Of a stretch of DNA of 64,000 bases, positions 2,375 to 32,526 are shown one piece after another. Origin of the DNA: Lepidodermella squamata (taxonomy: Eukaryota; Animalia; Gastrotricha); assembly GCA_047495785.1 (NCBI GenBank), contig JBLDXI010000046.1, positions 310,001 through 374,000 on the forward strand, written 5' to 3'. The first letter of the stretch is position 1, and every line of letters begins with the position of its first letter. The notes below the pieces were generated by a model. It made no database searches and was not told where the DNA came from. It saw only the letters and a program-made list of their open reading frames with translations. The position numbers were made by a program, and so were the translations under genes.

Positions 2375-2763
2375 TCAATTGATGTGGTACCAGCTCCTGG
2401 CCATATACGTCTGGGGCCCATTACCATTATTATAGCAATCTTTCAGCAGGTAGCACAAACGCAGGGGGCCGGGGGAATACACGAACGTGAAAGCAGAACA
2501 GGCATGTTCTATTACGCAGTAAAATCTGCAGTCTATTTCATCCATCTCATAATCTGAGCCCTTTACAAGCTCGACTTGATTGGATGGCTTCTTGGTCAAG
2601 TCTGTAGTTGTTCGACAATCGCCCACGGCTGCTTTGTAAGCTTCACAAATCAATAATCGCATTTAATAACATGGCCATATTTCCCGATGGAAAATAACTA
2701 ACCTGCCGAGCAAACGCCAACTACGAACACCAGAGCAAAGGCAACTGCGAGCTTGTTAGACAT
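2375..2763 (-). CDS. Small secreted PAN/apple-like protein, copy 1 (108 aa; exons 2763-2703, 2640-2375)
   Basis: Exon 1 encodes signal peptide MSNKLAVAFALVFVVGVCSA; 62-nt GT-AG intron; mature region has 6 Cys in PAN spacing (C...CxxxC-x5-C...CYLLxxC); upstream TATAAA and downstream AATAAA on the minus strand. Confidence 0.85.
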
Positions 2764-3299
2764 GGGTTGAGTTTATGAAGAAAACAAATATCAAATTTGA
2801 AGAATGTTTTATCAAAAATTACGCAATTAGTGCAATAATTTATAGGCTTTTCATGTACGAAAACTCTTGCGCTAACTAACAACAGAGAAAACGCAAAACA
2901 TGCATGATGCAGCTGAAGCAATGAGAGCTGGGCGGTACGTGGCAAATCATGCTTGGCGCTTAAGGAAGAGGCTTTGCCAATTTCAGTGAATTTTACTGGC
3001 TGAATACTTTCTCACGTGTACTACTCCCCCGATCTTCAGTATAAAACATCGCAGCTGATGCAACAGGCGCTATAGCCGGCGAAATTTGTTGTGTTATGCG
3101 AACAAAGGCTATATAGGAATATGTTCTAAACGCCATTTATGTTTGAATTATATCTTGAGTGCAATGTTAAAGATAGAGGCAAATATAGAAATCATCGGTA
3201 ATTAGCCGGTTGCTCAAGCGAGCTTAATTATCATGTAAAGAATTAATGCGACCAAATGCCCTTTTTCATTCATATCGTACAGTATAGATTATAGATTAA

Positions 3300-3480
3300 A
3301 TTCGTAGGTCGTCGCAAGACGGTATTCACGAGCGTGGTGGCATTTCAGTCTGGTTTATATGTGCAGAGAACTTTGCAGACCACTTCAGTCAAGCGATCAG
3401 CTGATTGCAACAGGACTAGATTGAATGGATTCTCGTTCAAGTTTGTATATGTTCGACAATCGCCTGCCACTGCTCTTTAA
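3300..3480 (-). pseudogene. Decayed PAN-family exon 2
   Basis: RAVAGDCRTYTNLNENPFNLV...VCKVLC is homologous to the intact copies but has a frameshift and stops; no signal exon seen. Confidence 0.7.
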
Positions 3481-3734
3481 CCCGAATTTCAAAAGCGCGT
3501 TAATTTTGAATAAAACCGAGCGAACCGACCAACAGCGGCAGCGACAGCGCGGTGGTTAAGCCTTACACTTATGTACTAGGTACATGCTAAAAGCTACAAA
3601 TCGATCTAGAAAACAGTAAGCATAACTTGCCTGAAAGAATCCAGCTTACAGTTAACATGAGACGTAGGTACGTAGCTACGTCTCATGACAGTTAAGATTC
3701 AAGCTGCAACGCCTTAAGTGTATTACCTAGTGGT

Positions 3735-6270
3735 AAGTGCAGAAAAAAGGACATGGTATGTGACTTTGAGGTGCGATGAAGTAAAATAGCGCCAAACCAA
3801 AATTGACCAATAATCAATCTTTATTTTTATCAATCTCCAATAAGGCTAAGCGAGCGATCTACCATTTGAGCTGCCCCTTGTGTCTAAATTAACATTAAAA
3901 AAGCTATTCTATAATCTAAAGAAATAACGTAAAACTAGCAGTAAGTTTGAAAAAAGCTAGCGGCATCTGGGAGACTCGAACCCCCACACTGCGATTAATT
4001 TGTACCAAACTTATAAAATTTCTCCATTATCCTAAAAAATCAGATCAATCCATGTTAGGGGCCTTCTAAGACTCTGACGGCTGGCTGATGGTGTCGCGTG
4101 TTTTAGCTCGTAAGAAAAAACATCACTTGCATCAATATCTAGCCATATTCACTTTGAGCCTACCAATAACCAACATTATTTCCGGTTGAAGTTGACCTTA
4201 AAACCAAGTTGACGCTCCTGAGTCGGACGTCCGGAAGTAGTACAGTTGGCCTTGAAGTTGACGACTTCGTGGTCGACTGTGAATTTGACATGTGGCTTAT
4301 ATTTCTTCGCTTTTTTCGGCGCCGGTCCATCGGTTGCAGTCACGGCCGAGGCAATGCTCCAAACGCCATTTATGCTTGAATTAAATCTTGAGTGCAATGT
4401 GAAAGATAGCGGCAAATGGTATACAAGCAACTGTTTTCCTTGACAAATTTTCTCACAAGAGTTCTATTGCGCTTAGCGAAGGGGGTTAATTAACAGAGTG
4501 GAAGGGGGGTACGCAAGTTGAGCGAGAAGTGGGGCAATGTCGAATTGAAAAATCGACGGGGACTGGTGTTCGTCGTGGCCGGCGGAAGGCGCCCGTCGTA
4601 TTTTCAATTGAATAAAATCGATTTCCATTCGATGTTAATTGAATTTCAATGTAATCTTCTCAGGGATGGTCTGATTTCCATTCGACTGGCCTATAAAGAT
4701 TAAAGATGTTAAACAAGAAGCTCCCGCCGTCCCTTCTCGGGATGCTGCCATTTTAAAGTCAAAATCGAATAATAAATAGTTGCGAAAAAACGGGGAAATT
4801 GACAGGGCGTTGATCGAGTAAATCGTTAAGTATTGATAGCCTCTTTCATATGCTAGATCAGACCCTATCGACTATGGAAAATCGGCTAATAATTCCAATA
4901 ATTCAGAATAACTCGAACGAATGAAATCCGGGATTTTACTTGTGTTTTCCTATTAGACTGACTGTTTATTCGAGCGAGGTTTTTTCAAAAACGGACGGCT
5001 TTACGTTGTATGCAAAATCGCAGGGTTCAGCTTCAATAATTTGAGAAAAACTAGCTTTCTGGCAGGGTATCGAACTCTGGCCTCCAGTATGATGCGGGGA
5101 TACAAATAAATCGCAGTGTGGGGGCTTGAGTCTCCCAGATGCCGCTAGCTTTTTTCAAACTTACTATTAGTTTTACGTTATTTCTTTAGATTATAGAATA
5201 GCTTTGTTAATGTTAATGTTAATTTAGACACAAGGGGCAGCTCAAATAGTAGATCGCTCGCTTAGCCTTATTGGAGATTGATAAAAATAAAGATTGATTA
5301 TTGGTCAGTTTTGGTTTGGCGCTATTTTACTTCATCCAGGGTATAATACCGACCGGTTTTTTTGTTGAAAAAACCACCCACCGGTATAAACCGGTTTAAA
5401 CCGGTGAAAAAAACCGGTTTTTATATATATATGCTAAAATCACTGAAATGTCTTATTTGACCTAGCCAGAGCTCGTTAGCATTTGGTCTAATAGAGATTT
5501 GGACTGCACCACGTGATTCTACGTGAAAAACTGCATAGCTTGATATATCACACGGCCATTTTTCTCACCCGGAAGAAAATTATTTTTTTAGTGCAATAAA
5601 GCAATATAAGAAACTAAAAAACGCAGTTATCTCCGGAAGTATGATGACTAGTTAAATTCTGAAAACGGATTCGGATCCACCGTGAAAAGTTACCTCACCG
5701 CGGTTTCTAAGGGGGGTTTCAAAGTCAAAGGAAGCGGTTTTGCCGGTTTTATTTGAAAATTTCAACTTGAAAGGTCTAAAACCGCCTAATTATACCCTAC
5801 CGAAAGTAAAACTGATTTCGCGATAGTTTCCTTACTATTTTAGCTATCGTCATGAAAATTTGGTATCCAAGGTAGAATTTGCCGCTGAACACGATGGTGA
5901 CTTCGAATCACCCGCATCAGGTATCGATTATCGATTATCGATTATTGGTAACTGATCGAGTGATCGTTTTTTTTAAATTTAGCCCAATCGATTTTATGTG
6001 ATACAGTGTAGTCTTTCTAAAGTATTGCAGCTGTGCGGTATTGCTCCTGGGGACATAATGACTCTTAGGCGACTTCTGGCTTGCTGTTATCTATGTAAAT
6101 TTGAGCTTTTTTGCGTGAAAACACCCCAAAAACCGCGGTTTTTTCAGGCCCTAAAAAACCGGTATAAACTGGTACCGGTTTAAACCTGTTTATACTGGTT
6201 GGGGTTTAAACCGAATACCCTGACTTCATCGCACCTCAAAGTCACCGATCATGTGCTTTTTTCTGCACTT
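3735..6270. repeat. Inverted segmental duplication: ~3735-4004 versus 5101-5336 plus 6231-6270
   Basis: About 270 bp are near-identical in reverse complement; the right arm is interrupted by the hAT insertion. Confidence 0.85.
5337..6222. mobile_element. Non-autonomous hAT-family transposon
   Basis: 8-bp target-site duplication acttcatc (5329-5336, 6223-6230); short TIR CAGGGTAT...ATACCCTG; subterminal (a)accggt repeats at both ends; the empty site is visible in the inverted copy at ~3770. Confidence 0.9.
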
Positions 6271-7140
6271 CTTTCTGGGGCGGGTGCCAGAACGACGGCT
6301 GCCTTCCGCCGGCCACGACGAACATCAGTACTTGGATGTGGGAGCTGGGGTGTTGCGACACCCCAGAACCCCTGTACTTCGCACCCTGTCTGATGGGAAA
6401 TCGAAATTGTCGAGAAATCAAAATTGCCCTTCGCGGGTCAATGGGACTTCGCCATGCAGTTCGGCGTTATTTGAGGCGGTTATCTTAAATTCTTGAGCCA
6501 GATTCCCAAAGTAGATAATGCACGGACGAAAGCTCATGTTCTCCAGCAACCGCTCGTCTAACAGCCCGCTGATCGAAGGCATTGAACACGTCCTTTGTCC
6601 TAAGGTTAGGTGTTTGGTGCCAATTGACGCGATAACATCGTCAGATTTTCGCTGGAAATTAGAGTGTTTAGCCCGAAAAAAGTCTATAGTTGTCTCCATG
6701 GCGATCGGTCGGGAGAAAGCTGCAATAGGCTATCGAAAGTTTTTTCTTTGAAACGGTAATCGCCGCCTTAAATGGAGGTCGTTGGTATTTATGTTGAGTA
6801 ATTCTTCACATTCCTCGCTGCAATTGTAATTCCCGAGCATGAAGCGATTGGCGATGAGAGACATCGATTATAGGCAAGCCATAGAATAGTTAATTCGTTG
6901 AAAGAACATTCCCAATGATTTACTTTTTATGGAGAGTATACTCTCCATTGGGGATAGTTTACTCTCAATATTGGATCGAAGGGAAAGCGATTTTATTTAG
7001 TAATCAAACTAACGCTAAAGCAAATTGGACCAATGATCTTTATTTTTATCAATCTCCGACAAGGCTCACTACTCATCTCATCTTATGGCATTAGCCCTTC
7101 ATTCTCACCGCTTCTGCTGAGTGGAGTTCTCCAGGCTCCA

Positions 7141-7509
7141 CTACATGACCCAGCTCGAGGCGTCACTCACCGCGGGCCGATTAGCGCAGCTATTCAACAT
7201 GTAGCACCTTTGCAAGGGTTTCACAGCGGATTTCGCGAGCGTGATGGCCTTACAGCCTTGTTGAAATATGCAGAGAGTATGACAGACCACTTCAAGCATG
7301 CGATCACCACCATCCATGTGGACTAGATTGGAAGGATTCACGTTCAAGTCTGTAGATGCTCGACAATCGCCTGCCACTGCGCTGTAACCTTCATAAATCA
7401 AGAATCGCATTTAATAACATTGGCTGTATTTCCCGATAAAAAGTAACCTACCTGAGCAAACGCCAACGAAGAACACGAGAGAAAAGGCAACTGCGAGCTT
7501 GTTAGACAT
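7141..7509 (-). CDS. Small secreted PAN/apple-like protein, copy 2 (101 aa; exons 7509-7452, 7388-7141)
   Basis: Signal MSNKLAVAFSLVFFVGVCS, 63-nt GT-AG intron, and the same 6-Cys frame as copy 1. Confidence 0.85.
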
Positions 7510-8048
7510 GGTCTGAGTTTGCGAAGACTACGAATATCGAAGTTGAAAAATGTTTTATCAAAAAAGTAGGCGATTAGCGCCATAATTTATAGGCTTTTAT
7601 TGTCCGAAAACTCTTGCACTAACTAACAACAGACAAAACGGCGATTATGCGAGATGCAGCTGAAGCAATGAGAGTTGGGCGGTCGTGGCAAACATGCTTG
7701 CCGCGTAAGGGAGAAGTTTTGCCAATTTTAATATTTCACTTGGTGAGCTAATTTCTCGATTGTTTTACTTGGCCGATCTCCAGTAAAAAACATCGCAGCT
7801 GATGCAATAGGCGCTATATAGCCGGCGAAATTTGTGAAGTTAAGCAAACAAAGGCGACGTTGCCAAAATGTTTTAACGCCTTTTATTGCTTGAATTATAT
7901 GTCAAGTGCAATGTGAAAGATAGAGACAAATAGGCAAACGTCATCGGGTAATTGGCCGGATGCCCCAGTTAATTTAATTATCATGAAATGAAATCATGCG
8001 AGCAAATTCCCTTTTATATATATATCGGAGAGCCTACATCACCGAAAT

Positions 8049-8343
8049 ATGTTCGAAATCAGGTTGATCTTATAGCTCACAGCAACTCTTGCCTTATGCC
8101 AAGGCTACGCTAGTTCCAACGACACAGCGAAACGGCAAATGAAGCCATTCAGAGACGCTGTCGTTACTAGTAATGACCGGGTGCGAACTAAGGGACAACA
8201 TGATGTGTAAAGCTGCTCAAGAAATGGTTGTTCAAATCGTCAACGAACGGCGGGACATTCTACCCAACTGCCATATCGAACTTGATTTTCGTAACGAAGG
8301 TCCTTCCGGTGGACTCTCAGTACAAGAAACCATGGCTTTTACC
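8049..8343 (+). pseudogene. 5' fragment of the class C GPCR gene
   Basis: Near-identical to 11921-12220 but with an in-frame stop and indels; homology ends abruptly at ~8343. Confidence 0.85.
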
Positions 8344-8404
8344 CATATATAGATGCTCATGTAAGTGATAGAGACTCGAAACGCCGACACTGCGATTAAT
8401 TTTT

Positions 8405-8452
8405 TATCCCCGCGTCATACTTGAGGCCAGAGTTCGATACCCTGACAGGGAG
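8405..8452 (+). pseudogene. Decayed tRNA-Asp-like 3' portion (second copy on minus strand at ~5060-5102)
   Basis: tatccccgc..gtca..gaggccagagttcgataccctgacagggag aligns by eye with the metazoan tRNA-Asp(GTC) 3' two-thirds, including the B box; the 5' arm is missing. Confidence 0.5.
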
Positions 8453-8511
8453 CTAGTTTGTTTTGCAAAATACTGAAGCTGAACCCTGCGATTTTGCCTG
8501 CAACGTAAAGC

Positions 8512-8580
8512 CGTCCGATGTGGTCTTGAACTCATGAACCTGGGATCAAGAGTCCCACGCATCAGATATAAATTAGCTAT
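8512..8580 (-). pseudogene. Decayed tRNA-Lys(CTT)-like sequence
   Basis: Minus strand has anticodon arm TGGGA-CT-CTT-GA-TCCCA followed by ggttcatgagttcaagaccacatcggacgg; the D arm is degenerate. Confidence 0.55.
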
Positions 8581-8965
8581 TCATTTCAACAACTTTTTTA
8601 AAATTCCCGTCTAGATATCTTCCAGCTTCTTGATTTGCAACTTTTTCCTGAGGTCAATTGCTGATCTATTAATCTCATCTTAATTGCCCTAAATCTGTTT
8701 TAATCATTTCATTAATTAATTATTTATGATCATTCTTATAAAATCGCTTCACATTATTAGCTTGGTAAAATCGTGATTTACTGGAACTTTGTGGTATTTG
8801 TTAACGATTGGGAAGTTATTTCTCCATTTTTGAAAAATCCCCGCTGGAATAAACTGTCAGCCTAATTACTCGACCAACGCCGTGTCAATATTCCCGTTTT
8901 TTCACAGCTATTAATTATTCGATTTAGACTCTAACTGGCCATGCCTGAGAACTGAGAAGATAATA

Positions 8966-9297
8966 CATTGTGTGACCAAGTCCAATCCAATGCGCACGCT
9001 GATTGGTCAATCGATCGTTGCTATGACTCCCGGATGAAACGTTCTGTCGTGCGATCCATAACATTTTTTGCAACAAGTGTTTTTTGCCGCAGCAATTTAC
9101 CACAATTAATATGGAGTTTACGCTCGTGGTCAATGGAAACCGGGCAGAGGGTGTGGCAAGGTCATTTTTTTCATAAATATAAAATAATTTATTAGTGGAT
9201 CGCACGACGAAAATGTTTCATTCCGGAGTCATTAGCAACGATAAATTGACCAATCAGCGTGCGCGCGAAGGTTCAACTTACCAGTGGTTCCACAATG
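8966..9297. mobile_element. MITE with ~90-bp imperfect TIRs (partial related copy at ~35060-35171)
   Basis: gcgcacgctgattggtcaat...gtcgtgcgatcca mirrors tggatcgcacgac...attgaccaatcagcgtgcgc; TA flanks. Confidence 0.75.
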
Positions 9298-9399
9298 TAA
9301 TAATTAGATTCAATCGATTTTTCCTCTTGTTGTTACTTGTTGTTTTGTAGGCTATGCTTTGATGGCATTTTCTTATTTATTTCGCCGTTCGCCGCGGAG

Positions 9400-9633
9400 A
9401 TATTATTTTAAGGTGCTGTGGGGGTCATTAGCTCGATTAGATTGGGTGGATTTATGTTCACGTTTGTATTGTTTGCAGGTACTCGACAATCGCCTGTCAC
9501 TGCTATGTAACTTTCACAAATGTAAAATCGCATTTAAAAACACGGTTATATTTCCAATGAACAATAGCTTACCTGCCGAGCAAATGCCAGCCACGAACGT
9601 CAGAGCTAAGACGATGGCGAGCTTGTTAGACAT
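9400..9633 (-). pseudogene. PAN-family pseudogene
   Basis: Intact signal exon (MSNKLAIVLALTFVAGICSA), but the paralogous acceptor AG reads AA and exon 2 is truncated after ...INPPNLIELM. Confidence 0.8.
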
Positions 9634-10419
9634 GGCTTGAGTTTTATGACGAAAACGAATATCGAATTGGAAGAATAAAAAATTAAGCGATCAGCGCAAT
9701 AATTTATAGTCGCTTCTTGTACGAAAACTCTTGCACTAACTAAGGACAGAGAAAACTGAAAACATGCGTGGTGCAGCTGAAGCAATGAGAGCTGGGCGGT
9801 ACGTGACATAACATGTTTGCCGCTTCAGGGAAAATATCGAAAAGTTCTGCCAATTTCAATGAATTTTACTGGGTGAATACTTCTCACTTGTTCTACAGTC
9901 TGGTTTATACAGTGTATATGAAGAGAAGTGCCTCGCAAATTTTTTCACCAGCGGCATTTTTGGCGGCCGGAAAGCCTTTGCTTTGGTTGCAACAATCAGC
10001 TCCAACATTGGCAATGCATTTTCATCGGCCCCAAATTTTGTTTAAGCCATACAAGCAACTGTTTTTCTTGAGAAATTATCTTTCGCGAGAGTTCTATTGC
10101 GCTTAACGAAGGAGTTAATTAACAGAGGCCTTTATAAGCAGATCGATTCCACAGGCCCCAAAAGTGAACTTCAACTACCTAAACAGAAGCGACTCCTTCC
10201 TAAGCGGCACTAATGGTACTTCTTAAGCGATCCTTATAGCCCACCACAGTTCTGACCGCGAATGATAACCCTGCATAGCTACCGGGGTCTTTAATTCAAT
10301 TAACGTACATAATTTGTTTTGCCGCTCCTCTTTACTAATCGAAATATATGAGGAAAAATGCTCAAAACTGGGAATGGATCCAGCAATACAGAGGTTGCCG
10401 AAAAAGCCGAGTTTGCGGA

Positions 10420-10522
10420 GCACTAGTGCAGAGAAATTTGCAGACGGCTTCAGTTAAAGCGATCAGCTTAATGCAGCTGGACTAGATTGGATGGATTCAC
10501 TTTCAAGTCTGTAGATGCTCGA
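10420..10522 (-). pseudogene. Decayed PAN-family exon 2 fragment
   Basis: RASTDLKVNPSNLVQLH* followed by frameshifted VCKFLC. Confidence 0.65.
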
Positions 10523-10833
10523 CTAAGGTGTGACAGCGCGGTGGTTAAGCTAAACACTTATGTACCAGGTACATGCTGGGTACATATTCATCTGGCATAA
10601 TTGTAAGAATAACTTACCTGAAAGACTTCAGCTTACAGGAAAGATTCAAGCTGCAACACCTTAAAAGCACATGATGGGCGACTTTGATTTCAATTCAATA
10701 AAGTAAAATAACGCCAAAGCAAAATTGACCAATAATTAATCTTTATTTTTACCAATCTCCAATAAGGTTCACTACTCATCTCATCTTATGGCATAAGCCC
10801 TCCATTCTGCTGGTTGAGGTTCATCAGGCTCGC

Positions 10834-11203
10834 CTACTTGACCCAGCTCGTGGCGCCATTCCCCGCGGGCCCGTTAGCGCAACTATTCAGCATGTAGCAC
10901 CTGCCCGCGGGTGTGACCAAGTCGGAATTCACGATCGTGATAGCATTACAATTTGCTTGAAATATGCAGAAAACTTGGCAGACGCTTGGATTCATGATCT
11001 TGCCCGTTAGCAGCTTGACTAGATTGGATGGATTGACGTTCAAGTCTGTAGATGCTCGACAATCGCCTGCCACAGAACTGTAACCTTCACAAATCAAGAA
11101 TCGCATTTAATAGCATGGCTATATTTCCAATGAAAAATAACTTACCTGAGCAAACGCCAACGACGAACGCCAGAGCAAAGGCAACTGCGAGCTTGTTAGA
11201 CAT
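10834..11203 (-). CDS. Small secreted PAN/apple-like protein, copy 3 (102 aa; exons 11203-11146, 11084-10834)
   Basis: Signal MSNKLAVAFALAFVVGVCS, 61-nt GTAAG...AG intron, 6-Cys PAN frame. Confidence 0.85.
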
Positions 11204-11920
11204 GGCTTGAGTTTATGATGAAAACGAATATCAAATTTGAAGAATGAAAAATTAAGCGATTAGCGCCGTAATTTATAGGCGTTTCTTGTACGAAAACTCT
11301 TGCGTTAACTATCGACAGGCGAAACGGCAAACATGCGCGATGCAGCTGAAGCAATGAGAGCTTTGGGTACATGCCAAAAAATGCTTGAGGAATAAGAGGC
11401 TTTGCCAAGTTTAATGCTTGCCGCTTAAGGGAGAAGTTCTGCCAATTTTAATATGAATAATTTCTCAATTGTTTTACTTGGCCGATCTTCAGTTAAAAAC
11501 ATCGCAGCTGATGCAATAGGCGCGATAGCCGGCGAAATTTGTGGTGTTAAGCAAACAAAGGCGACATTGTCAAAAGGTTTAAACACCAATAATTGGTTGA
11601 ATTACATCTTGAGTGCAATGTGAAAGATAGAGGCAAATAGGCAAACGTCATCGGGTAATTGGCCGGATGCCCCAGCTAATTTAATTCATTTAATTCATGA
11701 AATTAATTCGTGCGACCAAATTCCTTCTTCATTCACATCGAATTTGTCGGCCCCTGAAGCCGATCGCTTGTCGTCAGCCGTCCCCTAAACCCTCACGGGT
11801 AAGGCCTTTTTTTCTACTCTCTAACATCACATGCCTACGGAGGACGAAAAATAAAACTGATTCATTTGGTCATTTGGTCATTCACATCGAACAGTATTGA
11901 ACAGCCTACATCATCAAAAT
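11204..11920. promoter_or_regulatory. Divergent intergenic spacer between PAN gene and GPCR; conserved TATA box and CAGCTG E-boxes
   Basis: Minus-strand TATAAA at 11272-11277 (~70 nt before the PAN ATG) is kept in the copies at ~2840, ~7587 and ~9703; two CAGCTG motifs are conserved in the copy 1-3 spacers; the spacer recurs at 1-220, 2764-3280, 7510-8040 and 9634-9900. Confidence 0.55.
11729..11891. mobile_element. Short insertion flanked by a 14-bp direct repeat (SINE/retroposon-like)
   Basis: tcattcacatcgaa at 11729-11742 and 11878-11891 with a tcatttgg-repeat tail; absent from the paralogous spacer at ~8020. Confidence 0.5.
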
Positions 11921-13979
11921 ATGTTCGAAGGCAGGCTGATCTTGATGCTCACAGCAACACTTGGCTTATACCTAGGCTACGCTAGTTCCACCGACACAAC
12001 GAAACGGCAATTGAAGCCATTCAGACTACAGATGCTGTCTTTACTGTTAATGACCGGGTACGAACCTAGGGACAACATGATGTGTAAAGCTGCTCAAGAA
12101 ATGGTTGTTCAAATCGTCAACGAACGGCGCGACTTTCTACCCAACTACCATATCGAACTCGACTTTCGAAACGAAGGTCCTTTCGGTGGACTCTCAGTAC
12201 GAGAAACCATGGCTTTCACGCGGAGAATCGAAAATTCAACTGACATAACTGCCTCCCCAGTTTTCACAGGCCCATTTTTGTCGTCAGCATGCCGTCCAGT
12301 TGCATCTATCGCCCATCATTTGAACATGGTCATGGTAGCAGGGTCGTGTACTGGACCACCGCAAACTGCGAAAAGGAACCTCTACCCTAATATGTATAGA
12401 ATCAGGTCAGCGGCTGAGCTCTCAGTTTACGCTCGGACCTATTTCTTAGCGAAATTGACGAGCATTCGAAAAATCGGAATTTTGCTGAACGCTGCTCAGG
12501 CATTCAACTACGACACGGCTAGTTTGTTCTACCAGGCTGTCCTAGCTAACGGTTTCCAAGTTCTTGCATTTGACGGAAGTTATGACTTCAACGATGATTT
12601 TATGTCGTCGCTAAAATCTAAGGATGTTCGAGTTTTCAGCATGGATTCAGGCGATCCTCTGATTGCGCTTCGGTTTCTGTGCCAATGCTTCAAATTCGGC
12701 ATGAAAGGACCGCGGTATTTGTTCATTTTTCAATTCGTAACCTATATCGACATTTATTCCCTACCTTTCAATATAACCCAAGGCTGCAATCGTACGACAA
12801 TCATCGCTCAATTTGAATATTCTTATTTTATCGGAATTTCACTGGAAGTTTTAAGGCCGATGAATAATAGGTCGGAATTAGGCCATTCCTACGAAGATTT
12901 CGAGGCTCTTTTCACGGATTTTACGAATAACACCAGAACACCAGATTCAGACTTTCGATTCATTTGCTACGACCGAGTTTTAGCAGCTTTGATGGTCCTA
13001 AATGGCACTGAGGCAATCCTGAACCAGAAAAATATGACCCTTAAAGATTTCAAGGTGGATACACACACCGTAATGTTAGCCGCTAATCAAAGTGCGGCCC
13101 GACTTGATTTCTTCAATTTACGCTACGGTAGGTTCAGATATTCGTCCCGCCTTGAATATGGCTCTGAGCCTCAGGTAGTTGCATACTGGTCTCCGCAAAA
13201 GTCTTTGGTTCTAACCCACCAAATCACATTGGTTAAGGAGCTCGTATTCAATAGAGGAGTTCAATCGGATTCAGAAACCTTTTCCGAAAGATTCAGCTTC
13301 ACTTGAAATCCATGTAACGAAAATTTCTCCAGCAACAACTGCGATTGGAATTGGTCTGGCAAATGTAGCCGGCTCGACTCAAATTTTGACCGGAATTCGT
13401 TTTGTCCATGAAGTCGGAAAGACGAATAACTTCATCTCAATCGATTTATCTTCATCATTTTTCGTTGTACATGGCAGCTCGCTGTTCTGCTCCGGTCAGA
13501 TCGTCTTTCTAGTTGGCGGAGCTTCGTTAGTTAACGCGTGTCTTACCGCGACATTGCTCGGCGTGCGTGACTTTTTTCGAAATGAAAAACCGGAAGCAAA
13601 GTCCAGAATGGGCGAGCACACTGAAAGCATCTCGGAGGCGGACGTTTCTTACAATTCTGAATCTGATGTAATCTTAATTGAAAAGAGTACCTATTGCACG
13701 TCCCCAAACGCACCGGCCTTTGTTGGGGCGATTGTTATTTCAAATATCATTGTTTCTCTCGCCGGGCTGCTGTTCAGTTTCAGCATTGATAACGCCACGA
13801 AAAAATGTAAAATCGCCAATTTAGCCGGGATTAAACCGCTACTACCGGCATCAATCGCCTCATTTTCGATGATATTGTTCGGTCTATTGGTCGAGGTTAT
13901 TCTGTATTACGGAAATTACGCCATTGTTCGAAATATTTCCATGTTTTGTCTTACCTTGCTGTATTCGGTGGGAGTTTAG
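11921..13979 (+). CDS. Class C (GABA-B-like) GPCR: signal peptide + Venus-flytrap domain, then an out-of-frame degenerate TM region; possibly a pseudogene
   Basis: VNERRDFLPNYHIEL, GPFLSSAC, YPNMYR, LKSKDVRV and LCQCFKFGMKGPRYLFI are typical ANF-receptor/GABA-B ectodomain motifs. The PKD-TM1 segment and TM3/5/6/7-like stretches are in a different frame (shift at ~13230-13275), and TM4 appears to be missing. Confidence 0.75.
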
Positions 13980-14276: not shown

Positions 14277-15303
14277 ATGGCAAACGATTGGGATATTAGA
14301 GGCAAGGTGTGCATTGTAACTGGAGCCAACTGCGGAATCGGCCGTGAAACTGCCCTGGAGCTCGTGAAATTAGGCGCAGGTCGTGTTATTCTCGCCTGTC
14401 GTAATTTAGAAGCTGGTCGAAATGCGGTCAAATACATTCGGGAAAGAGCCGGCATTAGCAACGAAGATGAGGCCGAAAAACGCCTGACCCTACGACATCT
14501 CGATCTTGGCTCGCTAGAGTCAGTTCGCAAATTCGCTGCTCAGATAAATGCTGAGGAAAAGCAGTTGAATGTTCTTATCAACAATGCAGGCGTTTTCCCT
14601 GAAAACTTCACGAAAAGTTATACGGCTGATGGCTTTGAACTTGGCTTTGGGACGAACCATATCGGTCATTTTCTGTTAACAAAGCTGCTTCTGGATCTAC
14701 TGAAAAAGTATGTTTTATAGAAACTTTTCTAGGGTAAAAATCAACTTTCGCTCGAAACATTTAGATCAGCCCCGGCTCGTGTTATTGCGGTCTCGTCAAT
14801 TGTTCACAAATTCTGTTGGCCGTGGGGATTTCACATCGACGATCCAAACTTCGAAAAATCATGATACTTGGGCTTCCTGTCGTACTCTCAGTCGAAACTC
14901 GCCAACATTCTGTTCGCTTACGAACTCGACCGCCGTCTTAATTCTGAATCACCCTCGGGCGTCACTGCCTACAGCTTGCACCCAGGTGAAATCGAAACGG
15001 AACTTCACCGCAACACGCCTTGGTTTCACACTCTGCTTTTCCCGTTGCGGAAACTGTGGTACCAAACCCCGACTCAGGGTGCCGCGACTACGGTTCATTG
15101 TGCAACAAAACCAGGCATTGAAAAATACTCTGGGAAGTATTTCTCGTAAGTTATGCGCTTTCAAAATCTTATAATGTTGAGATGGAGTATCCGATTTTAG
15201 GAAATCAGCTTTGGAGGAGACATTTGCGTTCGCCCATGATGACGTAGTCGCTACTCGTTTGTGGGAGATGAGTGAGAAAATGATTGCTGAAAAATCTAAG
15301 TGA
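14277..15303 (+). pseudogene. RDH11-14-like SDR, copy 1, with premature TGA (exons 14277-14707, 14765-15145, 15201-15303)
   Basis: TGANCGIG, NNAG, NHIGHF and YSQSK motifs; TGA at 14862-14864 where copies 2, 3 and 5 have Trp, upstream of YxxxK. Confidence 0.85.
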
Positions 15304-15690
15304 GACTCTTGGCGAGGAACTTATGAAAAGTGCTTTTGATTCTGAAGAAAATGAAGAATAAATTCCTCCCTGAGAATATTTTCACCATCTATTTTATATC
15401 GTGGTTGAACTTGTTTGGAAAAATTGGACGATGGCAAATATCAAAACCATTAGCTCATCTTTTCCGTCATTTCATCATTCGATGAATGTTTCAGGCAAAA
15501 AATGAAAGCGACTAGAAAAACTACACGCTTCAGTGTGTAAATTAGGTCAATATTTTTTTGGACGCGGCGTCACATGCTTCATTGAATGAATGAAAACAAA
15601 AAACCGCACGCTCATTCATTCTGCCATTTTTATTGAAACTTATCATTAAAAACTATACAGCGAATTTGCTCTAACACTCTGAATAAGATA

Positions 15691-16888
15691 ATGGCGACCG
15701 ATTGGAATATTAAGGGCAAGGTTTGCATTGTAACTGGAGCCAACTGCGGAATCGGCCGTGAAACTGCTCTCGAGCTTATCCAACGAGGCGCTAGTCGTGT
15801 TATTATAGCCTGCCGCAATTTAGAAGCTGGTCGAAATGCCGTAAAATACATTCGAGAAAAAGCCGGTATTAGCAACGAAGATGAGGCCGAACGACGCCTG
15901 GTCCTTCGCCACCTTGATCTTGGCTCGCTGGAATCGGTTCGGAAATTTGCGGCGCAGATTGAAGCCGAGGAGAAGGAGCTGCATGTCCTCATTGAAAATG
16001 CCGGCGTTTCACCGCCCAACTTTGAGAAATGCTATACGGCTGATGGTTTTGAACTTGGTTTCGGGACGAATCATGTCGGCCATTTTTTGCTGACCAAGCT
16101 GCTGCTCGATCTTTTGAAGAAGTAAATTTCAATTTTAATTTCTCAATTGTCCAAGATATTTTCGAGATAAAAATTTGAAAATTCAATAGAGATTCAGAAT
16201 TTTTATTCAAAGCTTTTCTGGCATCAGAAATTGAGAAAACTAAATCAATGAATCAAATCAATTCGCTCAAAAATCAAGTTATTCATATCGAGTCATATTG
16301 GTAATTAGCAATTCGAGAACTTTGTAATGAAGCATTTTCATCAATTGGCAGATCGGCCCCGGCTCGCGTTGTAGTGGTCGCTTCTCTTGTCCACAAGTTC
16401 TGCTGGCCGTGGGGCTTCCACATCGACGATCCTAACTACGAGACGTCGTGGTACTTTGGAGCTGCATCCTACAGCCAGTCGAAACTCGCGAACATGCTGT
16501 TCGCTCACGAACTCGATCGCCGTCTCAACTCTGAGTCGCCGTCTGGTGTTACCGTCTACAGTCTTCACCCGGGCTCTGTCAACACAGAACTTGCCCGAAA
16601 CGCACCTTGGCTTTCAGTTTTGACTGCTCCGCTCCGAAAGATGTTCTTCCTCACCCCAACCCAGGGGGCGGCTACTACGCTTTACTGCGCTACAACACCC
16701 GGCATTGAAAAATATTCAGGCAAATATTTTTCGTGAGTTGATAGTCGTAAATCTGAATTTTTAGCCTGTCGTTTTCTTATTGCAGAAATTCGGCTGTCGA
16801 AGAAACATTTGCGTACGCTCATGATGACGTAGTCGCTACTCGTTTGTGGGACTTGAGTGAGAAATTGATCGCTGGAAAGTCAAAGTGA
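15691..16888 (+). CDS. RDH11-14-like NADP-dependent SDR, copy 2 (exons 15691-16121, 16352-16732, 16786-16888)
   Basis: TGxxxGxG, ACR, ENAG, NHVGHF, YSQSK, LHPG, GKYF and LW-x-x-SE motifs; GT-AG introns at conserved positions. Confidence 0.92.
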
Positions 16889-17293
16889 AGACCTTGGCAA
16901 TGAACTAATTAAAACTATTGCAAATTCTGAAGAATGAACAATAAATTCCAAATTCCATGTTCACCCAAAATTGTCTATCGCGGGCTGACTCTTTTTGGAA
17001 AAATTAGTTCCAATTATGGATCGTGGGTCGATGGCAGATTCATAAATCTCGAACACATCTTTAATGTTGTTTCACTGATTGATGAAATATTCAGGCGTAA
17101 AATGAATGCGACTAGAAAAACTACACGCTTTAGTGTGTAAATTAGGTCAATATTTCTTTTGGACGCGGCGTCACATGCTTCATTGAATGAATGAAAACAA
17201 AAAACCGCACGCTCATTCATTCTGCCATTTTTTATTGAAACTTAGCATTGAAAAATCTAATTTATCATACAACGGGATTGCTCTGAATTTGAA

Positions 17294-18467
17294 ATGACGA
17301 CCGATTGGAATATCAAGGGCAAGGTTTGCATTGTAACTGGAGCCAACTGCGGAATCGGCCGTGAAACTGCTCTGGAGCTAATCCAAAGAGGCGCTGGTCG
17401 TGTTATTCTCGCCTGCCGTAATTTGGAAGCTGGTCGCAATGCGATCAAATACATTCGAGAAAAAGCCGGTATTAGCAATGAAGATGAGGCCGAGCGACGT
17501 TTGGCACTTCGTCATCTCGATCTTGGCTCGCTGGAATCGGTTCGCAAGTTTGCGGTGCAGATTAAAGCCGAGGAAAAGCAGCTGCATGTTCTCATTGAAA
17601 ATGCAGGCGTTTCCCCTCCCAATTTTGAGAAGTGCCTTACGGCTGATGGTTTTGAACTTGGTTTCGGGACGAATCATCTTGGCCATTTCTTGCTGACCAA
17701 GCTTCTGCTCGATCTTTTGAAGAAGTAAATTTTAATATTTAATTTTTATGGCATTTTCGTAATGAAAAGTATAAAATTCAAAAAAACAAGCTTTTACCAA
17801 AATTATAAGTTCAAATTGTTCTAAAATGAGAAATCTGCATTACTAAATTCCCAAAAAATTCAGTTTTCCGAAACCGAGTTTCATTGGTAACTGGAAAAAT
17901 TCTTAAGAAGCATTTTTATCGATTGGCAGGTCAGCTCCGGCTCGCGTTGTAGTAGTCGCTTCTCTTGTCCACAAGTTCTGCTGGCCGTGGGGCTTCCACA
18001 TCGACGATCCTAACTACGAGACGTCGTGGTACTTCGGCATTGCCTCTTACTGCCAGTCGAAGCTTGCCAACATGCTGTTCGCCCACGAACTCGAGCGCCG
18101 TCTCAACTCTGAGTCGCCGTCTGGCGTCACCGTCTACAGCCTTCACCCGGGCGCTGTCAACACGGAACTCACCCGAAATGCACCGTGGTTTTATTATTTG
18201 ACTGCTCCGCTCCGAAAGATGTTCTTCCTAACCCCAACCCAGGGCGCGGCTACTACGCTTTACTGCGCTACAACGCCCGGCATTGAAATATATTCTGGCA
18301 AATATTTTTCGTAAGTTCTGATTTCAGAATCTTATTATTAAAAAATGGGATTTTTCTATTTCAGAAATTCGGCTGTGGAGGAAACATTTGCGTACGCTCA
18401 TGATGACGTAGTCGCTACTCGTTTGTGGGACTTGAGTGAGAAATTGATTGCTGATAAGTCAAAGTGA
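17294..18467 (+). CDS. RDH11-14-like SDR, copy 3 (exons 17294-17724, 17930-18310, 18365-18467)
   Basis: Same motifs (YCQSK); coding region and ~150 nt of upstream sequence are near-identical to copy 2. Confidence 0.92.
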
Positions 18468-18612
18468 GGCTTGTTTGAAGATGAACTGTTTCAAAGTGTG
18501 TTCGAGTTGAAGCGAGCTTAGAGACCTCAATAAATCATGTGTCGTGTATTTCTTGTTTCATTCTTGTTTCTTATTACTTAAAAAGTTAATGCTTTATTTA
18601 GAAATTTTATTC

Positions 18613-18678
18613 ATGGATTCTGGAAATTGGACTATCAGAAGCAAAGTTTGCCCTGTTACTGGTGAGAATGTCGGCCTA
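18613..18678 (+). pseudogene. 5' remnant of an SDR gene
   Basis: MDSGNWTIRSKVCPVTGENVGL matches the N-terminus of copy 6 (MDSGEWTIRGKVCLVTGANVGL), then homology stops. Confidence 0.7.
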
Positions 18679-19338
18679 TATGTTAAGTCCACGGCACGAG
18701 CCACCTGAAACCGTTCGAATTAGACAAAGTTCGGCCCATGCAAGTCCGGACAAGCCAAAAAGTACTTTACATTATAGGAGAGCTGTCGTACGAATTAAAA
18801 AATTTACACATGCTCATTCAATGTCCAAAATTTCTTGTTGAGTCAAATTTTACCTGAAAGAAAAGCCTTAGATAAAATGAGCTTTATGTGACAGTACGAG
18901 GTCAATATTTTTGACCGGTTATGTGAATACACTGTTGTGTAAAAAGCGTGCTCGTGCATTATACACCTGAGTATTTATATTTACCAACCAAGTAAGAGGA
19001 GCGGTACTCTCTAGTTTTTCAACGATCTTGAAATGCATTCAATAGTCAACTGATATCCGAGGCAATGAATATTCTTCAAATTCTCCCTATGTTGAAGTTC
19101 CAATGTTGAAATATTTGAAATAATAGAACTTCGCCTCTCGGTCTTACAACTCCTCGAGTTTTCCCCAATTGCTTTCCCATTCATTCTTAAATGGGCCTCT
19201 TTTGTTGCAAAGGTCGCCAATCTTTTGACATTTCCGAAATTTGCAGAGTTTATTTCTTATTTATTCCTGTATTAACCCTTGCTCCTAATTGTTACATTTC
19301 TTTATTTAGAGTTAATAGGTTACTTTTCTCGTTTCTTA

Positions 19339-20376
19339 ATGGATCACGGTGAATGGACTGTTAAAGGCAAGGTTTGCCTCGTAACTGGTGCCAATGTCGG
19401 CCTTGGCCGGGAGACTGTTCTCGAGTTGGTGAAGCAAGGCGCAAAACGAGTCATCATGGCGTGTCGTAATATGCAAACCGCCGTTGAAGCCGTACAATAC
19501 ATTCGAGAAAAAGCCGGAATATCCGATGACGAGGAAGCCAAGCGGCGATTGTCCCTTCGAAACCTGGACTTGGCGTCGTTAGCTTCGATTCGTAAATTCG
19601 CCGCTGAAGTGAATGCGCAGGAGCCCGAGTTGCATGTCCTGATCGAGAATGCGGCGGTTTACGGGCCAAGTGAAAAAGCTATGACAGCTGATGGCTTCGA
19701 AATAAGCTTCGGGACGAACCATTTGGGCCATTTCCTGCTCACCCAACTCCTCCTTGATCTGCTGAAAAAGTTGGTTCCCATAATTTTTGAAAATAACATG
19801 AATAATTGAATATCTGGCTGTTCGCTCTCTTAGGTCCGCCCCAACTCGAATTGTGATCGTTGCAGCCTTGGCTTATAAATTTTGCTGGCCGTGGGGGTTT
19901 CCAATCGATGATTTCAATTACGAACGAGGCTGGTTCAGCCCTTGGCTTGCCTACAGCCGGTCGAAACTCGCCAACATTCTGTTCACTCGCGAACTCGAGA
20001 AACGACTGAATGGAGGGGATAAAAAATCTGGCATCACCGTGTACTGCCTTCATCCAGGTGTTATTCCGACCGAATTAAGCCGGCACCGAAGCCAATGGCT
20101 ACAAGCAATTTTGCGACCAATCGCTCCCTATCTTCTAACGCCGGTAGCCGACGGCATTAAAACAACGATGCATTGCGCGACACAGCCTGGAATCGAGAAT
20201 TACTCCGGTCGATACTTCACGTGAGCATTTTTCTCGTTGTTGAGCCGTACAACTTTCTATACTATTTTATTGATTACAGCGACTCGCAAGCTGTCGATGT
20301 TTGGGCTATAGCAAAAGATGACAACAAAGCGAAAGATCTGTGGGAACTTAGCGAGCGCTTGATCTCCCAGAAATGA
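19339..20376 (+). CDS. RDH11-14-like SDR, copy 4 (exons 19339-19769, 19834-20220, 20280-20376)
   Basis: TGANVGLG, ENAA, NHLGHF, YSRSK and LHPG motifs; conserved intron positions. Confidence 0.92.
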
Positions 20377-21888: not shown

Positions 21889-24010
21889 CTAACCTTGGAC
21901 ACCTTGGATAAAAATAAATGAAGGCATTATGAGAAATTGAGCGACGTGTGACTCACGTGAGAAACAATCCGACCCTGTCCAACCGGCATTGCACGTGCAA
22001 TTTCGAGGGGCAGTGCAGATGCCTTGAAGGTAGCAGCCATTATTGCATGCCGCTGAAGAGTGAATTTGTAGTGTAAGAGAGCGAGATAAACTTCAACCCA
22101 ACTCAGAGCGCGTTTAAATTTAAAAAAGTCGACGTAATTAAAAAAAAACTTGAAAGCGACGTCAAATTAAAAAAAATGGCTCCCTTCGAACCTATTCCAT
22201 GTATATTGCCCTATGGCTTGCCATCGAAAAAAACAATTTCCCCCGATCTGTAACCCCGAGTGAGTTTGGCGCAGCTAAACGCCAAAACCATGGCTAGCCA
22301 TAGAGGATTCCCGTATTTCCGATAAAATCCGTAAACTAACGAGCTATGCAATCTGGTGACAGCCAGTCTGAATTGCAGCTACATCGGTTTGGGCGAATGC
22401 AGGTGCCACCATTAGGACAACCAGAAGGACAGACGGCTAAATATGGTTGGATTAGTCTTATTCGGGTGATATTCGAATAGTTTCTTACGTACGCGTATCG
22501 CAGAGAGTACCAGCCCAGCCCGGAGAACATGTGCATGTATTTGGACCCAAGCAACGTCCGCCGATGCCACAGCCTGGATTACAAGTTGCTGTCGAGAAAA
22601 TTTTATTTTAAAAGGAGACAGACTAGTTCTAGCTCGGCTTACGAGTTCCGCAATCCCAACCAGCCCAGCCGGCCTGGCATGTACATCTGTAGCCACCCAT
22701 GCTCGTTAGATCACCGACGCATGAGCCATTTTGGCACTTCGAGGGGCACGTGATCTCTGTCACGATGCAAAGCTTTAGACTATAGTTGATAGGTAGGAGC
22801 TTGCTCATCTAATGATTGATACTTAGAAGACTTGTCATTGATTGATAACTCCTCCGATATCGGGGCTCGGGGCCCGAGGAAGCAGGATAATGGACAATAT
22901 TTGCTACCTTCCATTTACAAAGTCTTCCGAGTCGTCCCTTACCGTTGATAGAGCCTATTACATAGAACAATTTTTCCAGCCTTTCAATTTCCCAGCATCT
23001 GGGAGAAAGGGGAGGGGGGAAGGGTACCTAGGTTGGGTGTTTTCAGCCCCGAATTTATCTGACCAAAGGGTAAACCTTGTGGTTGTTTGGGTTTGGTTAC
23101 CCCCCGTGCCCTTTCCCGACCCCCCTCTCCCGCACTACGCACACTGGTCTCCCGAGCTATCGCGAGTCGCAAAGATGTAGTAGGTCTAACTTTTAGGTTT
23201 ACTCACGGTTGATAAGCTGGCATTGTTGTCTCAAAATCGTCAGTTGGCTCAGCGACAAAGCAGCTTTGTGAATCGAAACGCAAGCATACTTATTGTTCCA
23301 CGATGAGGTTGTAGCAATTCTTGAAGAAAACAAGTATATAGTAGTTATATTCTAAGTATGGAGGTTATAGCTAACCTCCTGCCAAGGGTAAAACTCGTGC
23401 CTGTTGGCGGTGGAGGCTGGCCAGTTATCAAAAAGGTGGCTGTATCGCAGACTACGATATATGAGGAGTTGGTAGCGACATGAATGAGCGCCACAAATTG
23501 CCATGTCGCGTAAGTGCACGGCATTTGCCAGTTGTTAGTCGAGCCGTCAGCTGCATAAAGATAATTAGGCGTTGTATCTACATTGTTGTTACTATCATAA
23601 CGCCACAAATGGGTTCCCACGGTTCCGTTCAAATTCCATTCGAATAATCCACCTCGTTGCGGCGCGAAGACGAAGCCAGCTATAGTGAAAGAAGATGAGC
23701 CCATGCTGATTCTAGCATCGTTAATTTCAATCCAACTCGTGTTGTCTGCTTTGTTCGTCTCCCAAGCTGTTCTAGGTGCTCCAAAGGGTCCATCTGCCAG
23801 AACTCCTTGGTTCGTTTTGAATACTGCATCGATAGAATTGCCTGAGACGTCTCTAGTCGCGAAAAGCTCGTTGAGCGGCCAATATGCGACTGGATTCGGT
23901 AAATTAACGGCTTGATTTAGCTGAAACTGAGCGATATACTCCTGGCCATTAGCTTTCAGGAGAAAGCAGAGAGCATTGAGGAAGAAGCCCGAAGTCGTGA
24001 ATGAGTGCAT
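21889..24010 (-). CDS. Secreted LamG/ConA-like jelly-roll + 4 EGF-like repeats, copy G1
   Basis: Signal peptide; VAYWPLNE...DVSGN...GPFG...SWIE...SFTI...WQFVA...IHKAALS LamG-3-like motifs; four phase-1 EGF exons (CxxxCxxGGxCxxPNxCxCxxGWxGxxC); 9-nt microexon 21894-21902; terminal CPxxGC exon not found. An upstream in-frame ATG at 24058 is an alternative start. Confidence 0.85.
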
Positions 24011-24479
24011 TTTGGTGTAAAAAATCATTCTTCGTTGCTTGTGGATGTTATAAGGCATTGCAGGTCATGAATAATAAATGGATCAACTCAGCGTTTTCGC
24101 CAGTTTCCTCGCGACAAATCACGCCTATTACTGGCATTTTTTTGTCTTACTGCAGATTCTTAGTTGAGATTCCTGTTCTTAGTTCAATATTTACGTAGCT
24201 ATAGTGTTTATAGCCCCTTGCGGTGATAATTTATCGACATTTCATCAAATCAAACCTGTTGCAGGGCCAGTAAAATATTGAATTTCTCCAGCCATAGCCA
24301 GGATAAAAACGGGCGACGGTGACCTCATCAGTAGCTCGCCCTCAGCATGAGTCGTCCAATAAGGAAGATAGGGTAAAAAACCTCTGAGCGTAAAGGTGGA
24401 AAATCGTCGATTATGATGCTATGTTGGCCTTGAAAATTCTAGAGAAAAATTGCATTCTCGGCTTTCTTCGTCTCCCAAA

Positions 24480-32129: not shown

Positions 32130-32526
32130 ATTGAATTTCAGGCGTTCTAATAACGACCAGTTTTTGTTTTTAGACAAGGCTTGCTGCTGAATGGGATAAC
32201 ATGTTAGGACGGCCATTTCACTGCATAATAACCACGTGATCATCCAATTATTGACATGATTAATCCTTCTTTATCACAGCCATAATGTCGAATCTTGTTG
32301 GGATCGAACTTGGTTCCGATTAGGAATTCAAATTTATTACTTCGAAATAAGATAACGGGTTGTTACAGTATGTTGGCAAAAGATATTTCCAGAGTGTAGA
32401 AAAAGTCATTTTCGTGTCGATTGTAGATAGATTTTTGCGGTTTGAGAAAGTCGGAATTGGTCAAACTTGATAACTTTGCTGAGATCTTTATAGGCTCGGT
32501 GGCACATTTCGCTTATCCATATTCTG

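Follow-up and report, generated by a model that had tools for sequence, protein, structure and literature searches.

A tandem family of predicted secreted PAN/apple-domain proteins with a probably diversifying surface in the gastrotrich Lepidodermella squamata

Introduction

Why do neighbouring copies of a small two-exon gene in the gastrotrich Lepidodermella squamata differ so strongly in the protein they encode, when their promoters, signal exons and introns are close to one another? The question is raised by a stretch of 64,000 nucleotides (nt) of assembly GCA_047495785.1 (contig JBLDXI010000046.1, here C46, positions 310,001 to 374,000 of the forward strand), hereafter called the window, in which positions are counted from the first letter. 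An original prediction, made from the sequence without database searches, placed a tandem family of secreted PAN-like proteins of about 100 amino acids (aa) at positions 2375-11203. It proposed a diversifying effector, pheromone or recognition family in which coding divergence exceeds that of the flanking DNA. To our knowledge, gastrotrichs are a phylum with essentially one published genome, almost no molecular physiology and no described secreted families. The published decontaminated assembly of L. squamata comprises 122.8 Mb in 157 contigs with a GC content of 43.3%, a heterozygosity of 2.99% and strongly diverged haplotypes (PMC11660948). The genome searched in the present analysis comprised 121.2 Mb in 151 contigs.

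Results

Gene structure and predicted fold

The start sequence ATGTCTAACAAGCT occurred four times on the minus strand between positions 2375 and 11203 (at 2763, 7509, 9633 and 11203), and three of these occurrences opened complete two-exon models with products of 101-108 aa. The three intact genes of the original prediction were thereby recovered, all on the minus strand with the ATG at 2763, 7509 and 11203, and the peptides quoted for them matched the gene models exactly. They shared a common plan, namely a signal exon of 58-61 nt, a phase-1 intron of 61-63 nt (GT[AT]AGT ... GAAG) and a single exon 2 that encodes the PAN domain and runs to the stop codon. Copy 1 (108 aa) consisted of exon 1 at 2763-2703 (MSNKLAVAFALVFVVGVCSA), a 62-nt intron at 2702-2641 (GTTAGT...GAAG) and exon 2 at 2640-2375, which matched PAN_1 and PAN_4 below the curated cut-off. 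Copy 2 (101 aa) consisted of exon 1 at 7509-7452, a 63-nt intron at 7451-7389 and exon 2 at 7388-7141, and copy 3 (102 aa) of exon 1 at 11203-11146, a 61-nt intron at 11145-11085 (GTAAGT...GAAG) and exon 2 at 11084-10834. The second exons of copies 1 and 2 entered the family alignment, and that of copy 3 was the sequence used for folding and structural matching. Candidate AATAAA poly(A) signals, presumably used by the respective copies, lay on the same strand at 2302-2307 (copy 1), 7039-7044 (copy 2) and 10742-10747 (copy 3).

Splice sites were picked from the joined translations. In copy 1, the shortest of three frame-keeping introns was chosen because it keeps the N-terminal residues common to the other copies; the longer alternative introns kept the frame but lost these conserved residues, and an alternative acceptor 7 nt downstream (GTTACAG) was ruled out as it breaks the frame. 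Exon 1 encoded MSNKLAVAF..VGVCS(A), a predicted signal peptide with a short polar start, a hydrophobic core and small residues before the cut. The PAN domain begins one or two residues past the predicted cleavage region, and the gene models contained no propeptide. With its 19-20 codons exon 1 was too short for searching, and exon 2 alone served as the query for searches, family scans and folding.

The domain described beforehand as PAN-like was borne out by the family profile, the predicted fold and structural matches. Taken singly, the window copies reached only 12-18 bits in the Pfam scan, where the curated cut-offs are 21.4 and 27. Of the 15 family members, however, 12 matched PAN_4 (PF14295) at E<=0.01 (best 2e-7) and nine matched PAN_1 (PF00024; best 3.1e-6). 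The family profile also matched the apple domains of the factor XI heavy chain (E 4.8e-6), prekallikrein (8e-4) and, weakly, microneme PAN proteins, and in the profile alignment the core C-x3-C-x5-C ... C-Y-L aligned residue for residue with apple domains. Six cysteines were invariant in the 15 members: C35, C39, C45 and C62, which align with the corresponding cysteines of apple domain 4 of factor XI, together with the first (C8) and the sixth (C68). As C68 follows C62 by only five residues and lies away from the domain end, an apple-type end-to-end disulfide is doubtful in this family.

The AlphaFold model of copy 3 exon 2, computed on the 15-row alignment, had a pLDDT of 90.7 and a pTM of 0.82, and predicted a helix (residues 32-41) packed on a five-stranded antiparallel sheet (strands 2-4, 21-27, 47-52, 60-65 and 77-81). 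All top Foldseek matches were PAN/apple domains with probabilities of 0.98-1.00. In VIA-align, plasminogen, prekallikrein, factor XI, the lectin SML-2, the N domain of HGF and MIC4 aligned over 64-71 of 82 residues with Z-scores of 7.0-8.0 and a root-mean-square deviation of about 2.0-2.2 A, the range of Z-scores extending to 5.9-8.0 when the leech antiplatelet protein was included. Z-scores below 8 are weak singly, yet every top structural row was the same fold. Profile and predicted fold together make membership of the PAN/apple superfamily secure.

Divergence and selection

Divergence was pooled over 33 paralogue pairs for each gene compartment, as K in non-coding DNA and as nonsynonymous (dN) and synonymous (dS) divergence in exons. 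From 5' to 3', K was 0.30 at -600..-301 and 0.21 in the proximal promoter (-300..-1), exon 1 had a dN of 0.105 and a dS of 0.167, the intron a K of 0.10, exon 2 a dN of 0.43 and a dS of 0.38, and the first 150 nt after the stop codon, in the 3' untranslated region (3'UTR), a K of 0.29, beyond which the copies were unalignable. Among the three window copies alone, K was 0.35 (-600..-301), 0.19 (-300..-1) and 0.13 (intron), dN and dS were 0.05 and 0.14 in exon 1, and 0.44 and 0.33 in exon 2. The dN of the mature domain was thus the highest divergence of all compartments and roughly equalled the dS of the same exon. The claim that coding divergence exceeds non-coding divergence consequently stood for the amino-acid changes in exon 2, with the reservation that its silent sites were strongly diverged as well. 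Signal exon and intron were indeed close between copies, some paralogue pairs having introns one base apart while their exon-2 dS was 0.23-0.33. The promoter similarity, put at about 500 nt, was real and strongest over the last ~330 nt, and the supposedly conserved 3' flank proved similar only over a 3'UTR of ~110-150 nt (K 0.27 among the window copies), no closer than silent sites.

Selection on the mature domain was examined with our own codon-likelihood program, whose likelihood under M0 equalled that of IQ-TREE (-1910.70). The ratio dN/dS (omega) of the domain as a whole was not below 1 (1.16 under M0), and the site models supported omega values above 1 for part of the codons. All three nested comparisons, expressed as twice the log-likelihood difference (2dlnL), were significant: M1a versus M2a (2dlnL 27.6, p 1e-6), M7 versus M8 (29.1, p 5e-7) and M8a versus M8 (26.8, p 2e-7). 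Under M2a, 24% of codons had an omega of 0.12, 44% were neutral and 32% had an omega of 2.8; across analyses, the class above 1 comprised about 30% of codons with an omega of 2.2-2.8. The site-model test remained significant on gap-free columns (p 7e-5), also when two disabled copies were removed (p 2.5e-4). Simulation of 60 data sets under M1a, with the tree unchanged, gave a likelihood-ratio statistic of at most 5.4, compared with 26.9 observed. Sites with a posterior above 0.9 were, in copy 3 numbering, residues 5, 26, 28, 33, 37, 43, 46, 59 and 74. The predicted structure places residues 33 and 37 on a common helix face, together with residue 40, whose posterior is 0.87, and the other sites in the surrounding loops.

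Promoter and shared regulatory elements

In the window, each intact copy carried on the minus strand a TATA box, a proximal E-box and a distal E-box, located for copy 1 at 2838-2845, 2910-2923 and 3048-3061 (promoter 2838-3061), for copy 2 at 7585-7592, 7657-7670 and 7792-7805 (7585-7805), and for copy 3, outside the span first described, at 11271-11278, 11343-11356 and 11501-11514 (11271-11514). In an alignment of 330 nt upstream of 13 members, the TATA box (AAACGCCTATAAAT) stood ~75-85 nt before the ATG and was followed by a conserved stretch (GCGCTAATCGCTTAATTTT); the start context (AAACTCAAGCCATGTCTA) and an upstream element (CTC.CATTG[CT]TTCAGCTGCA) were conserved too. These four features were present even in distant members on other contigs, and the TATA box and CATTGYTTCAGCTG aligned across members on three contigs whose domains were only ~30% identical. 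A further CAGCTG element, near -330, was common to the cluster copies. That promoter elements persist in paralogues this old points to regulatory constraint, and hence the members would be co-expressed.

The motif CATTGYTTCAGCTG occurred 30 times in the genome, compared with a single occurrence of the reversed control; about 17 occurrences lay upstream of known members and 13 exact copies at other loci, unflagged by the protein searches. Further loci with this motif were C1:4671329, C3:514377 and 526932, C7:2442770 and 2474057, C9:760809, C10:2367108 and 2373466, C16:521886, C17:2381767, C29:3791634, C46:432807, and C48:123619 and 128011. The 13 could be more diverged members of the family or other genes with the same promoter.

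Family size, genomic layout and decayed copies

Six-frame searches of the genome with exon 2 and with the family profile returned 16 and 23 matches, respectively, and the start motif occurred 21 times, two of these occurrences corresponding to chance. In total, about 17 intact models with identical exon plan and intron phase were obtained (nine cluster copies and eight dispersed copies), for a family of about 20 members overall, with the signal exon motif MS[NI]KL in common. The cluster on C46 spanned 298 to 321 kb and included eight signal exons. Five of its genes were intact, namely the three window copies and those with ATGs at C46:309677 and 306566; the damaged copies comprised one with a TGA within the signal exon (298376), a truncated one (319633) and two exon-2 fragments. 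Eight further intact members, located on C46 at 1.0-1.16 Mb and on C3, possessed an MS[IM]KL signal exon, a short phase-1 intron and a single domain exon, with domains 28-35% identical to that of copy 3. Two members 30 kb apart (C46:1095705 and C46:1125905) encoded identical 111-aa products, which indicates a very recent segmental duplication.

The whole window was collinear with C29:3,607,000-3,690,000 at a mean identity of 93% (86-98%) with many indels, and the PAN cluster was its most rearranged part. Since this degree of collinearity fits the diverged haplotypes reported for the species (PMC11660948), the C29 segment is taken, from the alignment, as a second haplotype or homeologous copy of the window region. 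Only four signal exons, three of them in intact genes, were found on the collinear C29 stretch, and a recent dispersed copy lay at C29:3,807,439. The difference between eight signal exons on C46 and four on C29, together with the truncated and decayed copies, is a sign of birth and death. Counterpart genes of the two contigs were ~81% identical over the gene unit including the promoter, with a K of 0.13-0.26 in the 600 nt upstream. For the counterparts of copy 3, divergence was 0.051 in the intron and 0.073 upstream, about as in the DNA around them, so neither part is intrinsically resistant to change.

The three decayed copies previously described in the window were all found again, on the minus strand. 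The truncated copy (9633 to ~9429) retained an intact signal exon (9633-9573) and promoter motifs at 9702-9709 and 9774-9787; its acceptor is shifted by one base, and about 30 codons of exon 2 are followed by unrelated DNA. A second copy (~3240-3482) was an exon-2 remnant without intron, signal exon or promoter, whose profile match contained two TGA and one TAA in-frame stops. The third (~10400-10543; repeat family D19, recognised by translation) was a frameshifted exon-2 fragment without a 5' module. As the same unrelated sequence follows both exon-2 fragments, these were probably broken before the unit containing them was duplicated.

An inverted repeat was also observed within the cluster (3775-4004 and 5101-5336), with arms of ~230 nt that are 95-98% complementary and ~1.1 kb apart, and resembles a terminal-inverted-repeat element or a duplication in tail-to-tail arrangement. 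Over its outer 70 nt, an arm was 91% similar to copy 3 at 10698-10767, in the 3'UTR and poly(A) region, so that the conservation of the 3' flank may be partly repeat-derived. A tRNA-derived element near 3960-4000 was ruled out, as ARAGORN finds no tRNA there.

Relatives in public protein collections

A HMMER scan of 1.84 billion representative proteins gave 341 hits, of which the best 150 are considered here. All 150 were at least 162 aa long, nearly all had several matched stretches, and no single-domain counterpart of ~100 aa was among them. Seven sampled hits (four of the top 10 and three shorter ones lower down) were PAN_1/PAN_4 proteins, mostly with multiple repeats. The hits traced to their source records belonged to sharks, dinoflagellates and metagenomes, each score being a sum of weak per-domain matches. 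Word searches among proteins of 45-143 aa returned no candidate with copy 3 exon 2, and with the 15-member alignment 126 candidates, none at E<=0.01. A language-model look-up in the ESM Atlas pointed, as a lead only, to a 95-aa PAN cluster (score 0.95) in which the commonest taxon was Rotifera. With gastrotrichs hardly sampled so far, the age of the family can scarcely be judged from its absence from databases.

Neighbouring genes

The GC content of the window was ~41-42%. Next to the cluster, a large exon with an ANF_receptor (Venus-flytrap) domain on the plus strand (11897-13306) starts ~700 nt from the ATG of copy 3, the two genes thus having a short divergent intergenic region in common; a word search among proteins of 258-820 aa gave no relatives of this open reading frame (ORF) at E<=1e-10. 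Copies of adh_short (short-chain dehydrogenase) were both tandem and dispersed (14277-20224, 31198-32243, 47524-48483), those at 14-20 kb recurring every ~1.4-2.0 kb. A second tandem family at 22300-55700 comprised six units 3.7-10.8 kb apart, with minus-strand ORFs of 221-240 aa (23345-24058, 27035-27709, 33869-34543, 39865-40569, 50652-51317 and 54969-55691), and the one ORF tested had no Pfam match. Also on the minus strand were an apparently intronless 340-aa ORF at 41127-42149, assigned to glycosyltransferase family 15 (GT15, the fungal Kre2/Mnt1-type alpha-1,2-mannosyltransferases; E 5.8e-23), and a GT6 (ABO/alpha-Gal type) exon at 56647-57126. Both glycosyltransferase families are unusual for a small protostome.

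Discussion

The locus is probably best explained as part of a birth-and-death family of secreted single-PAN binding modules that share one expression and secretion cassette and combine a constrained scaffold with a diversifying surface. Each protein of this lineage-specific multigene family would consist of a signal peptide and one PAN/apple domain with three predicted disulfides, and the tandem cluster would evolve by birth and death. The common cassette, comprising distal and proximal CAGCTG E-box elements, TATA box, 5'UTR, start context, MS[NI]KL signal exon and ~62-nt phase-1 intron, would imply a single expressing cell type and export of the product. In the mature domain, purifying selection would act on the six cysteines, G-[DE]-C-R, A-x-T-F, C-Y-[LM]-L and a C-terminal Trp, and roughly one position in three would evolve faster than silent sites, these positions facing outwards on the single helix or belonging to the surrounding loops. 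As the likeliest working model, the family may be a repertoire of extracellular protein- or glycan-binding modules whose specificities have diversified in response to variable targets, for example microbes, food organisms or other non-self.

Several observations weigh against this reading. The mean omega under M0 is not distinguishable from 1 (2dlnL 1.1), recently separated pairs have an omega of 0.24-0.92, and the three window copies, tested in pairs, give weak results (p 0.03, 0.10 and 0.78). Recombination inflates site-model tests, and when each half of the domain was given its own tree, as a crude guard against it, the p-values were 0.012 and 0.23 (combined 0.019). Divergence at the silent sites of exon 2 is about four times that of the intron. 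When runs of shared polymorphic sites were tested by permutation, both the 5' region and the N-terminal arm of exon 2 contained significant tracts, a mosaic resembling gene conversion. From this high exon-2 dS and the mosaic tracts, the contrast between compartments would be due in large part to constraint on, or gene-conversion-like homogenisation of, the 5' cassette, besides fast amino-acid change. The word searches, moreover, recovered none of the family's genes from the protein collections covered. Both the binding function and the targets we purely infer, because proteins of the PAN fold family bind proteins or glycans and because the same evolutionary mode elsewhere marks interactions between organisms. 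A pheromone or gamete role seems less likely, since the animal reproduces mainly by parthenogenesis.

Much of this evidence would equally be expected if there were no adaptive diversification and the domain, weakly constrained outside its disulfide scaffold, drifted near neutrality while regulatory constraint and short conversion tracts kept the 5' cassette, here including the start of exon 2, alike. Besides a mean omega near 1, the conversion-like tracts, recent pairs below 1 and the lack of a significant likelihood-ratio test for the second half of the domain, such drift would account for an exon-2 dS (0.38) near the K of the 3'UTR and far above both the intron K and the exon-1 dS (0.17), for introns that differ by one base in pairs with clearly diverged second exons, and for the many decayed copies. 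It seems unlikely to us all the same, as neutrality of one class of sites is rejected by all three nested comparisons, the rejection persists when gapped columns and the two disabled copies are left out, the neutral simulations never came near the observed statistic, and the fast sites are not scattered but fall, in the model, on a helix face and loops. The interpretation as a diversifying family is therefore partly supported: it has in its favour the PAN domain, the tandem cluster, the retained promoter and signal peptide, the codon class with omega above 1 and the lack of a ~100-aa relative in the length-limited word searches and among the 150 best scan hits, and has to accommodate the high dS, a mean omega of about 1, recent pairs below 1 and a pattern that has been described before.

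We see a very remote chance that the copies are not working genes at all, being unexpressed relics or passengers of a repeat element whose frames are open by chance or recent origin. Half of the window copies are broken, ~70 nt of the 3'UTR resemble the outer arm of the 230-nt inverted-repeat element in the cluster, and the protein collections searched hold no gene of the family. Relics would, however, hardly have kept six cysteines, splice sites, intron phase, TATA box and start context in ~17 intact models despite an exon-2 dS of 0.3-0.5 within the cluster and ~30% domain identity to dispersed members; the 24% of codons with an omega of 0.12, one recent pair with an omega of 0.24 and the confident fold prediction also speak against it. 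A different reading takes the cluster for a highly polymorphic non-self-recognition locus, with the PAN fold as a variable scaffold, divergent haplotypes under balancing selection and the promoter-less exon-2 fragments perhaps serving as conversion donors. It is hinted at by copy numbers of eight on C46 versus four on C29, by counterparts ~81% identical versus ~93% overall and by the two exon-2-only fragments between intact genes, and we hold it to be improbable.

Setting the favoured reading, a birth-and-death family with a diversifying surface, beside known systems shows what is shared and what is not. The small secreted salivary gland protein (SSSGP) genes of the Hessian fly are alike in evolutionary mode only and are not homologous: in both, a tandem cluster combines conserved non-coding and signal parts with a diverged mature region. 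SSSGPs are not PAN domains and have no sequence or fold relationship to the present family. They are plant-directed effectors of a parasite; L. squamata, unlike the Hessian fly, is a free-living bacterivore. In the fly, the tandem genes conserve promoter, 5'UTR, signal region and intron. Their mature parts have diversified greatly, with dN/dS exceeding 1 there and staying under 1 in the signal region, and Chen et al. (2010; PMC2955719) explain the similarity of the non-coding parts by homogenisation over short tracts. The pattern of conserved flanks around a variable mature region is accordingly not novel. SSSGP expression is documented, and dS in the mature region is only 0.00-0.20 with omega up to 18 (PMC2955719), whereas the gastrotrich family has a high dS (0.38) and a modest omega.

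The PAN/apple modules of factor XI, plasma prekallikrein and plasminogen, which gave the best profile and structural matches, share the fold and the C-x3-C-x5-C ... C-Y-L core. They are modules within large multi-domain proteins under ordinary constraint, whereas the gastrotrich domain stands alone behind a signal peptide in a diversifying array; in apple domains, the first and last cysteines tie the ends of the module, whereas the sixth cysteine here lies five residues past the fifth. Small secreted proteins with one or two PAN modules are represented by the leech antiplatelet protein (PDB 1i8n), the Sarcocystis lectin SML-2 and apicomplexan microneme PAN/apple proteins (Z 5.9-7.3), which bind an extracellular partner, for instance collagen or galactose-ended glycans. 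Identity to them is 11-17%, with no evidence of orthology, and theirs is a role in blood feeding or in the attachment of parasites to host cells. Cone-snail toxins and amphibian skin peptides likewise keep the signal, diversify the mature part on a fixed cysteine framework and belong to families expanded by duplication. Their precursors usually include a propeptide and a much smaller mature peptide, and are produced in a venom or skin gland, whereas the gastrotrich genes have no propeptide and their product would be a globular domain of 80-95 residues.

What would be new is the use of a stand-alone PAN domain as a diversifying repertoire; fold and evolutionary mode were both already known, and no new principle is involved. 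On the favoured reading, the PAN/apple fold would join the short list of scaffolds found in diversifying secreted repertoires. It was in gall midges that a variable mature region was first described alongside a conserved promoter and intron; the family would be a second, unrelated case, helpful in asking whether the pattern stems from regulatory constraint or from gene conversion over short tracts. For gastrotrichs, it may offer an entry point to the biology of extracellular recognition, be it in immunity, feeding or adhesion.

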